Assembly (NCBI RefSeq): GCF_947568905.1
Contig: NC_079166.1
Coordinates: 19,282,001-19,346,000, forward strand
Direction of reading: 5' to 3'
Source: Ostrea edulis
Lineage: Eukaryota
Length of the DNA: 64,000 bases
The notes under the pieces are model-generated. The model was not told the origin of the DNA. It did no database searches and worked only from the letters and a program-made list of their open reading frames with translations. A program made the position numbers and the translations under genes. Every line of letters begins with the position of its first letter. Position 1 is the stretch's first letter. This document shows positions 28,948-59,156 of this stretch, piece after piece.

Positions 28948-29685
28948 GTATATTTCATATATATTCCAGGATCATATTTACGTAGTGTTTTGTTGTACAG
29001 AATATTTTAAAATAGCCGTTTTGTAACTTCCATTTGTGTTTTTAATTACCCTACTGAAGTAGGGTTGCAAAAATAAGTCTATAGACTCATTTATGTTCCT
29101 CTCCACGGAAATCTTTAGTAAAAGGCGAAAGATTTAATCGTGGATTGAAGAGAAACCAGAGTAAATTAAATTTAGGTAAGTTTAATACTTATACCATTTT
29201 CAAATGACGCTCAATGCGTTTAAATTATTATGCATTTTTACGACTTTATTTATCAAAATTTTATATAAGCAATTCTTTGTCTATAAATTAACTCAAATAA
29301 TAGTTATTGTACTTTAATATCATTTTTCTTGTTTATTTTATTTGGTACAAAAACACATCAAAAATCAATAACATTGTTTAAAGTGATTCATTTTCAAAAT
29401 ATGGGATATTCATTGTCAAAGGGACATAACCTGTATAGTATTTACAACAATAATAAAATTAACAAAAAAAAAAAAAAAAAAAAAAAAAGCCTTGGAGAAG
29501 GCTTATATAGGCTGCAAGACTGCTGCCTAATCCATTTATGTTTCATACATAATAAAATATTGTTTAAATAACAACAACAAAATAATTAAAAAAAAAATTA
29601 AACAAACTAAAAAGAAAGAAATAAAAGAGAAAGAAAAATAACGCTACTGTGCTTCCCTTCGATTCTACGTTTTTAAAGTACTATA

Positions 29686-35196: not shown

Positions 35197-36087
35197 TGTC
35201 TGACGTGTTTCATGCCGATTGTTAGGCCGTTCTTGGTACACTGATTTTGACTACGGATTACTCCATTTACCTGATTAAGACAGGGCTCACGGCGGGTGTG
35301 ACCGGTCGACAGGGGATGTTTACTCCTCCTAGGCACCTGATCCCACCTCTGGCATATCCAGGGGTCCGTGTTTGCCCAACTCTCTATTTCTATTGCTTAT
35401 AGGAGCTATGAGATTGATCACTGTTCGTTATCTTCACCTTTCATTCATATGTCGATTTGATATATCCCTGTGAGCTCGAAATAAAGGACACCACAGAGTC
35501 GTCCACTTCTGCTTCATACTTAGATATTTTATTGAAAGTAGACATTAACGGCAAACTGACAACTCAACTGTATGATAAACGGGATGATTTCAGCTTCTCC
35601 ATCGTCAACTTCCCATATTTATGTAGCAATATTCCATTATCACCTGCATATGGTGTTTATATATCTCAACTCATTCGATATCCAAGAGCTTGTTCTGCGT
35701 ATAATCAGTTTTTAAATCGAGGTAAGCTACTGACAAAAAAGTTGATGGTACATGGGTTTCAACAGTCTCGATTGAAGTCAGCATTTTGCAAATTCTATGG
35801 TCGTTATAACGATCTAGATCGTCAATACAATCTATCATTGGGTCAAATGCTGTCTGACGTGTTCCATACCGATTGTTAAGCCGTTTTTGGCACACTAATT
35901 TTGACTGCGGATAACTCCGTTTACCTGAACATGGTGGGTGTGACCGGTCGACAGGGGATGTTTACTCCCCCTAGGCACCTGATCCCACCTCTGATATGTC
36001 CAGGGGTTCGTGTTTGCCCAACTATCTATTTTGTATTGCTTGTAGGAGTTATGAGATTGATCACTGTTCGTTATCTTCACTTTTCAT
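35197..36087 (+). mobile_element. Naiad-like Penelope element: pseudo-LTR (35197-35444) plus 5'-truncated body (35445-36087)
   Basis: RT thumb IYPCELEIKDTTES..SASYLDI..LYDKRDDFSFSIVNFPYLCSNIP..AYGVYISQLIRY; ORF stops at 35879 with no C-terminal GIY-YIG; a direct duplicate of the 3' end sits upstream. Confidence 0.85.
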
Positions 36088-57834: not shown

Positions 57835-58085
57835 CCCCGTGGGGATCCGGGTTAGAAGAGGTCCTCATTACCGCTTGCTTGTCGTAAGAGATTAAAATAT
57901 AAATGGGGTTGTCCTTCGGATGAGACCGCAAAAATCGAGGCCCCGTGCCACAGCAAGTGTGGTACGATAAAAATCCCTCCCTGCTCAAAAGCCGTAAGCG
58001 CTGAACATAGGCCTAAATTTTGCAGCCATTCACCGGCAATGGATACGTCTTCATATGAGTGAAAAATTCTCGAGAGGGACGTTAG
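57835..58085 (+). mobile_element. SINE (CCCCGTGGGGATCC-start subfamily)
   Basis: Collinear with 36097-36369. Confidence 0.85.
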
Positions 58086-59156
58086 ACTTTATTTTTCACG
58101 CCATTTCAACCTTGGGACTCTTCATAAAAATAAAATATATTGAATACAAAAAGTTGAGTTTTTTTTATGAAAGCATACCTTCTATGTACAAATAAGAAAC
58201 TTGTGGATTGATATTCCTATGATTTACGTCTTCATTTAGAGCATCCTAAATGTGATATAACATCAAATATGTGTTTTGTGTTTCTAAATAAGACACCAGT
58301 TCTTATTTATAGCAGTTATAATGATTTACAGGCATGTACCGTCTTAAGGAGGTGTGCATCATGAATTCGTCATATTGTCCTCGTAATGCATGTAAAATTT
58401 GAAATACAGCATATTTCAAATACTAGTATTCCTATGCATATGGAGATTTCTAATGAACTCAATAAATTACCTCGTTATGGACCCTGTGACTACACAATGA
58501 TACGCTAGACAGTGTCACTCAAATAATTTACATGTTTTTCAACGCCATTTTTCATGGACTGTAGACTTCTACTGGGAGATGAAGTCACTTCAAACTTAAA
58601 GGAAGACAAACACTCGTTTATGACATGTCTGACGAGAATTAGCATAAAAAAGGGCTCGCAGCTTTCCATCTACTCTCTTAGATTTCCTTAATTAGATTCA
58701 TTAAATTAAAGCATTTCTGAAATTATATAAGGGTATGACATTGTTTTTGAGATTGTCCAGTCAGATTACTCCGCGTTGTGAGACGGTCGTGACCCCCGCC
58801 GACTGTTTGTAATGTCTGTGTAGGCTTTCATAGGTAGTGATGTTTACACTTGAATGAACTGTTTTCTGCACGAGCTTTCATTTAGAAAAGTGGGGAGTTT
58901 GTTATTACTTTTGAAATATGTGTGGACTTTAATAAGATGAATCAGTGTCTGAGTCAAATTAGAATTAAATGTAGAACACAAAAGAATTAATCAAATTAAA
59001 GAACAGTATATGTGTATACAAACAAATAAAATCTTTTGCGGTTTTCAAACGTCAACAACCACACTTATTGCATGCAACTACGGGCGTTTTGAAAAGATGT
59101 CAAACATTTTGTTTTTATGTTTGTTAGTTGTGTTTGTCTTATTGTTTATCTGTTGT

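Follow-up and report, generated by a model that had tools for sequence, protein, structure and literature searches.

A Naiad-type element with a folded 3'UTR module

The 64,000-nt stretch analyzed here (henceforth the window; Ostrea edulis, NC_079166.1, positions 19282001-19346000) belongs to an 895-Mb assembly with ten large contigs and holds many copies of a repeat that share a sharp 3' end but differ in how far they reach upstream. The two copies that extend farthest, on the loci L031 (reverse strand, 3543-6668) and L032 (3732-6843), define an element of about 3.1 kb, and we used the 3112-nt copy L032:3732-6843 as reference (positions along it are henceforth called ref). Its last ORF piece (L032:5769-6617) hits the reverse transcriptase (RT) domain RVT_1 (PF00078), albeit below the Pfam cut-off, and finds thousands of RT relatives, the best named one being from Ostrea edulis. 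An upstream piece (L031:2934-3512, reverse strand) carries a GIY-YIG domain (PF01541, E 2.3e-5) above the curated cut-off. The ORF stops 226 nt before the end of the element. An N-terminal endonuclease followed by a C-terminal RT is the Naiad/Chlamys arrangement of Penelope-like elements (PLEs; Craig et al., 2021, PMC8557442). The lack of a canonical hammerhead, the severe 5' truncation, and the tandem and head-to-head pairs (the latter on loci L008, L034, and L035) also conform to the Naiad clade. The full-length copies are frameshifted. The family is very abundant, with 7267 first-look candidates genome-wide and about one copy per 3.5 kb in the DNA examined.

The copy of interest (35197-35444, plus strand) is 5'-truncated and begins with the last ORF codons (stop codon TAG at 35223-35225) and the unstructured 5' part of the 3'UTR (up to 35282), which align to ref 2861-2948. 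The 95-nt segment at 35283-35377 lies in the ~210-nt 3'UTR, 58 nt after the stop codon and 67 nt before the 3' end, and is followed by the 3' tail of the element (35378-35444). Homology among 30 copies ends within a few bases of 35444, and a GGUAYCUUC-like motif near the end recurs in other families. A second, longer 5'-truncated copy follows in tandem (35450-36087), comprising the RT C-terminus, a TAA stop codon at 35877-35879, and the domain at 35916-36030 with the outer 5' strand deleted, and has its 3' end at 36087.

An earlier note, made from the sequence alone, had proposed that the 95-nt segment can form a compact, pseudoknot-capable RNA domain without a hammerhead core, and indeed every helix drawn there is present. 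The outer helix has two parts, GGGC/GCCC (35283-35286 with 35374-35377) and CACGG/CCGUG (35288-35292 with 35366-35370), separated by a bulged U on the 5' strand and UUU on the 3' strand. It encloses P1, CGGGUGU/GCACCUG (35293-35299 with 35333-35339), a self-complementary element GACCGGUC (35300-35307) that extends to the 10-nt UGACCGGUCA in the full-length copy on L032, and P2, GGGAU/AUCCC (35313-35317 with 35340-35344), whose 3' strand directly abuts P1 and which crosses P1 as in an H-type pseudoknot. Between the P2 5' strand and the P1 3' strand lies a conserved unpaired loop (35318-35332), G(C/U)UUAC followed by a pyrimidine tract (UCCUCCUAG), of which UUAC is invariant in one alignment (A1). 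A 3' hairpin, ACCUCUGG/CCAGGGGU (35345-35352 with 35358-35365) with the loop CAUAU, completes the domain. Searching the window revealed 12 and 17 pattern matches against 0 expected, 19 BLAST tails, and 18 covariance-model hits, while no CUGANGA occurs on the sense strand of the terminus.

Covariation supports the fold across Naiad families

A single sequence says little about the reality of such a fold, since the minimum-free-energy (MFE) structure is not exceptional (z = -0.89 on the plus strand and -1.89 on the minus strand) and copies within one genome decay neutrally. We therefore fetched other Naiad families through their proteins. A word search with the last 283 residues of the ORF gave 6759 relatives, and for twelve proteins with different C-termini (57-78% identity) we retrieved the encoding contigs from more than 10 unrelated ENA and JGI assemblies of other samples. 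In all twelve families a recognisably homologous module follows the RT stop codon by 33-104 nt. A covariance model (R1), built from a MAFFT alignment using only the nested helices (outer, P1, and hairpin), finds these modules at 54-103 bits (E 1e-14 to 1e-29). Host taxa of these assemblies are unknown, so that phylogenetic breadth is measured only by RT divergence.

We next probed for covariation. On an alignment of 20 sequences (A5) the full structure, with P2 and the palindrome added as extra brackets, pairs in 87.2% of cells, against 68.5% with shuffled partners and 35-45% when partners are slid by 1-3 columns. In this alignment the outer helix pairs in 79% of cells with changes on both sides at 13 of 13 pairs, P1 in 90% (2 of 7 pairs), the palindrome in 95% (4 of 4), P2 in 95% (5 of 5), and the 3' hairpin, whose loop varies from 2 to about 40 nt, in 91% (6 of 6). 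Importantly, P2 and the palindrome were not part of the model's structure, so the alignment was not fitted to them. Tested alone on an 18-sequence alignment (A3), P2 gives 94% against 31-63% slid and the palindrome 91% against 25-48% slid, and RNAalifold on the structure-blind MAFFT alignment chose P2, the inner part of the outer helix (CACGG/CCGUG), the hairpin, and the palindrome flanks. By contrast, the MFE hairpin, which pairs the P2 5' strand with the pyrimidine tract of the loop, scores only 79% paired against 72% shuffled and 70% at slide +1, and is at best an alternative conformer. A parallel (Hoogsteen) triple between the tract and P2 was inconsistent across families by eye. Since an all-against-all column scan showed that with few clades many unrelated two-state columns also covary, single-pair statistics are inflated and we rest the case on contiguous helices and the slide control.

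As a prospective test, we scanned a metagenome collection for the invariant letters only (CGGGTG, CAG, CTTAC, and CACCYG, with their spacings), leaving P2 and the palindrome unspecified. Of 80 distinct hits, 43 have all five P2 pairs, for which chance gives 0.7%, and 23 have four, while a few hits with neither feature look like chance matches to the pattern. About 20 more variants of the module were found in this way, with new P2 variants including GAGAC/GUCUC, GAUCU/AGAUC, GGAAU/AUUCC, ACCAU/GUGGU, GACAU/AUGUC, AUGAC/GUCAU, GCGAU/AUCGC, and GUAGU/ACUGC. New palindromes, sitting at the same offset, include UUGCAUGCAA, GCCGUACGGC, UCUAUAUAGA, CCGUCGACGG, CCUUUAAAGG, UCGCAUGCGA, UCUCAUGAGA, and ACCAAUUGGU. 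Fifteen hits have an RT C-terminus 54-354 nt upstream, at 31-62% identity to the oyster RT. The most distant (locus L106, 31% identity) has an ORF that ends Naiad-fashion and keeps P1, palindrome, P2, and loop, but not the peripheral helices.

With these sequences added (A6, 35 sequences) the figures hold: 88.1% of cells pair against 33-43% slid, 0 of 500 shuffles reach the observed value, P2 pairs in 94.8% with double-sided changes at all 5 pairs, and the palindrome is retained in 96.4%; the hairpin is paired in 90% of cells. P1 is nearly invariant (92% of cells paired), with G-U/G-C alternation and one double change (U-A to C-G in the family from locus L064), so that its evidence is weaker and its pairing, and hence the pseudoknot, rests mainly on conservation and complementarity; the metagenome scan required the P1 letters and cannot test it. 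G-U pairs are frequent, for example 26 of 35 at one P1 pair, which places the structure on the sense strand. We conclude that the segment is an evolutionarily conserved, folded RNA module in the 3'UTR of Naiad-type PLEs.

The palindrome changes sequence but stays self-complementary

The stretch following the P1 5' strand is a perfect palindrome of 8-10 nt in nearly every family, yet its letters differ between families and more than 20 distinct palindromes were seen. All four pairs show double-sided changes. Notably, the two central adjacent bases are self-complementary in 34 of 35 sequences, with all four possible types (AU, UA, CG, and GC), and the sequences from loci L069 and L071 differ only by a central UA to AU swap. 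Adjacent bases cannot pair within a hairpin, and the folding energies agree, being 0 to -1.2 kcal/mol for the hairpin but -10 to -19 kcal/mol for the self-duplex. Three variants weaken the rule: a 6-nt palindrome shifted by 2 (L064), a 3-bp stem with an ACGG loop (locus L108), and an odd-centred one (locus L134). The simplest reading is pairing between two copies of the RNA domain, residing either on two RNAs or, because PLE transcripts are thought to start in the upstream terminal repeat (PMC8557442), at the two ends of one RNA.

5' ends do not support a SINE-like unit

The earlier note had also inferred that the domain defines a ~160-nt SINE-like mobile unit, and listed several copies that begin at or near its 5' edge. 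These truncation points are correct: the copies at 393, 4681, and 14418 start at ref 2951, 2949, and 2950, where the domain starts at ref 2949, the copies at 11893, 2765, and 49328 start 15-31 nt upstream of it, and those at 19149 and 62469 start inside it. All have unrelated flanks and are therefore independent insertions. To determine if this pattern holds on a wider sample, we took 70 copies chosen without regard to length (the window copies, 28 loci found with the last 68 nt only, and bystander copies in flanks). Their 5' ends run from ref 2093 to 3076 and 26 of the 70 start inside the domain. The six copies starting at ref 2941-2952 form a cluster no larger than those at ref 2893-2903, 3003-3011, and 3018-3025, and outside the window only 1 of 51 copies starts at ref 2949-2952. 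Moreover, 86 of 92 domain hits in this genome are followed by the Naiad tail, 81 of them at a near-constant distance, and the short copies are 97.5% identical to the tail of the full-length element, with no separate tail. One odd case that also starts at the domain edge, L002:567-795, is a one-off chimera of the domain's 5' three-quarters with the last 133 nt of another repeat family. A SINE-like unit is thus not supported, and we consider it very unlikely.

Possible functions of the module

The data show selection on an RNA structure, but in the absence of experimental or read-level evidence they do not show what it does. We favour, as more likely than not, a cis-acting signal for retrotransposition. 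In this view the invariant P1 and the G(C/U)UUAC loop would form a sequence-specific surface recognised by the telomerase-like RT of the element, so that it copies its own RNA by target-primed reverse transcription from the 3' end about 70-125 nt downstream. The palindrome would base-pair with the same stretch in a second copy of the domain, on another RNA or in the upstream terminal repeat of the same transcript, keeping a second template end at hand for the template jump that produces the partial-tandem (pseudo-LTR) insertions typical of these elements, one of which is this very locus. The GGUAYCUUC-like motif near the priming end fits this reading. A more far-reaching possibility, which remains tentative, is that such pairing is what feeds a second template 3' end to the RT and so explains the long-puzzling partial-tandem structure of PLE insertions, with the adjacent pseudoknot as the binding site of a telomerase-related RT and a functional counterpart of the telomerase RNA pseudoknot. 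The latter comparison is an analogy without homology: both would be H-type pseudoknots in an RNA copied by an RT of the TERT/PLE lineage, but we found no U-A-U triple-helix pattern on inspecting the purine and pyrimidine tracts, which was inconsistent across families, and there is no template-adjacent position.

Among other readings, an mRNA-level role in stability, nuclear export, localisation, or translation is possible though less likely. The 3'UTR location, the conserved sense-strand structure, and the end of element copies without an A-tract are compatible with it, and the palindrome could mediate mRNA dimerisation for co-transport as in Drosophila oskar. The present data cannot separate this from RT recognition, but conservation of a sequence-specific core across RTs down to 31% identity and a conserved terminal motif close to the priming end fit a replication signal somewhat better. 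A new class of self-cleaving ribozyme, perhaps cleaving tandem transcripts at the 5' edge of the domain to release a ~160-nt RNA, appears unlikely. The module sits where other PLE clades carry hammerheads, which Naiads are already known to lack (PMC8557442), it has a pseudoknotted core with invariant unpaired nucleotides, and 6 of 70 copies start at its edge. However, the edge cluster is not replicated outside the window, a ribozyme does not explain a palindrome that covaries as a palindrome, and the strand order (outer, P1, P2, P1', P2', hairpin, outer') does not fit the nested double pseudoknot of HDV-like ribozymes (P1, P2, P3, P1', P4, P2'). A gathering-score Rfam search of the whole window found only a U5 snRNA, and searches at E up to 10 for the window copy and up to 1 for nine other loci returned only noise (mir-134, mir-3136, and bacterial sRNAs), with no hammerhead, HDV, CPEB3, drz, or SECIS model hit. 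A 673-nt contig from an RNA library runs uninterrupted from the ORF through the whole domain, but this is weak evidence because assembled contigs, the form of all 24 runs examined, show only that RNA libraries hold the tail and cannot show RNA ends.

A DNA-level signal is also very unlikely. In Penelope and Chlamys the pseudo-LTR holds the transcription start site and promoter (PMC8557442), and palindromes are typical of sites bound by dimeric factors, yet no single factor would tolerate more than 20 palindrome variants, helices keep pairing through G-U intermediates on one strand only, and compensatory changes occur in four separate helices. A SECIS element, as found in the 3'UTR of some clam and spider Naiads, is effectively refuted: besides the lack of a model hit, there is no in-frame UGA in the last 283 codons, published Naiad SECIS elements lie 1-21 bp after the stop codon whereas this domain lies 33-104 nt after it, and the conserved fold is not a SECIS hairpin.

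PLEs are the closest mobile relatives of telomerase and Naiads fill bivalve genomes with tens of thousands of copies, yet no cis-acting RNA signal is known for Naiads. Craig et al. (2021) report that Naiads lack hammerheads and describe SECIS elements in four families without mention of a conserved 3'UTR fold, and full-text searches found no paper on it. The module provides a defined RNA handle, with a predicted pseudoknot supported by more than 20 compensatory variants, and is a candidate new RNA family for Rfam whose covariance model can annotate the many short Naiad tails that carry no ORF. Canonical PLEs also carry a conserved small structured RNA in their terminal repeat region, the hammerhead, but the module has no CUGANGA/GAAA core and no three-way junction. 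Structured 3'UTR handles, by which the RT picks its own RNA, are known for R2 (Rfam R2_retro_el, with a pseudoknot) and the 3' stem-loops of stringent LINEs, where structure is likewise conserved while sequence drifts. There is no sequence or model similarity to these, the RT here is of the PLE/telomerase-like lineage, and the module lies 70-125 nt from the 3' end and carries a self-complementary element that R2 lacks. With the retroviral dimerisation initiation site (HIV-1 SL1/DIS) and the palindromic loops in the oskar and bicoid 3'UTRs it shares a short, perfectly self-complementary stretch that stays so while its letters change, centre included, which is the signature of loop-loop or duplex pairing between two RNA copies. 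Dimerisation has not been shown here; the stretch is 8-10 nt rather than 6 and sits next to a pseudoknot stem rather than in a simple hairpin loop, in the 3'UTR of an element with no Gag or particle.

Insertion structures and 5' truncation points

Inspection of the Naiad insertions revealed one tandem pair with a 5-nt spacer in the window (35197-36087) and one with a 23-nt spacer in locus L045, while three head-to-head pairs (loci L008, L034, and L035) have 1-74-nt gaps. These are the insertion shapes published for PLEs. A second repeat family (henceforth family B) abuts the 3' end of the tandem Naiad copy (window 36099-36359) and is also found at window positions 44082-44267 and 57836-58087. 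Notably, in L002:567-795 the last 133 nt of family B (L002:663-795) are fused to the 5' three-quarters of the Naiad domain, which looks like a template-switch chimera that again begins at the domain's 5' edge. We also found that the 5' truncation points are clustered overall: in the numbering of the reference full-length copy (L032:3732-6843), four 4-5-nt windows (reference positions 2902-2903, 2949-2952, 3003-3006, and 3021-3025) hold 4-5 starts each, where about 0.7 is expected. Two clusters fall at the P2/P1 boundary and in the hairpin loop, and could be RT pause sites at the folded domain.

Variation in the 3' tail and in the module core

A GGUAYCUUC-like motif lies 10-25 nt before the 3' end of the element (window 35420-35444) and recurs in four otherwise dissimilar tails, those of loci L063, L068, L069, and L071. 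This motif is possibly part of the priming signal. The length of the tail after the domain varies from 67 to about 125 nt. A distant Naiad-like RT (L106:139-1660; 31% identity, with the ORF ending after the thumb) carries only the core of the module (P1, palindrome UUCAUGAA, and P2 GCGAU/AUCGC), about 340 nt after its stop codon, and in this copy CACCUG can instead pair with a downstream CAGGUG.

When contigs from RNA libraries (runs X1, X3, X7, and X9) were compared with the genomic copy at L032:6200-6900, A>G was among the commonest classes of difference (5-9 places per run); ADAR-type editing scars have been reported in copies of an abundant oyster PLE, and subfamily differences could give the same picture. 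Finally, the window also contains a U5 spliceosomal snRNA gene on the minus strand (29048-29164), identified by a full-length Rfam match (95.4 bits, E 1.5e-15).
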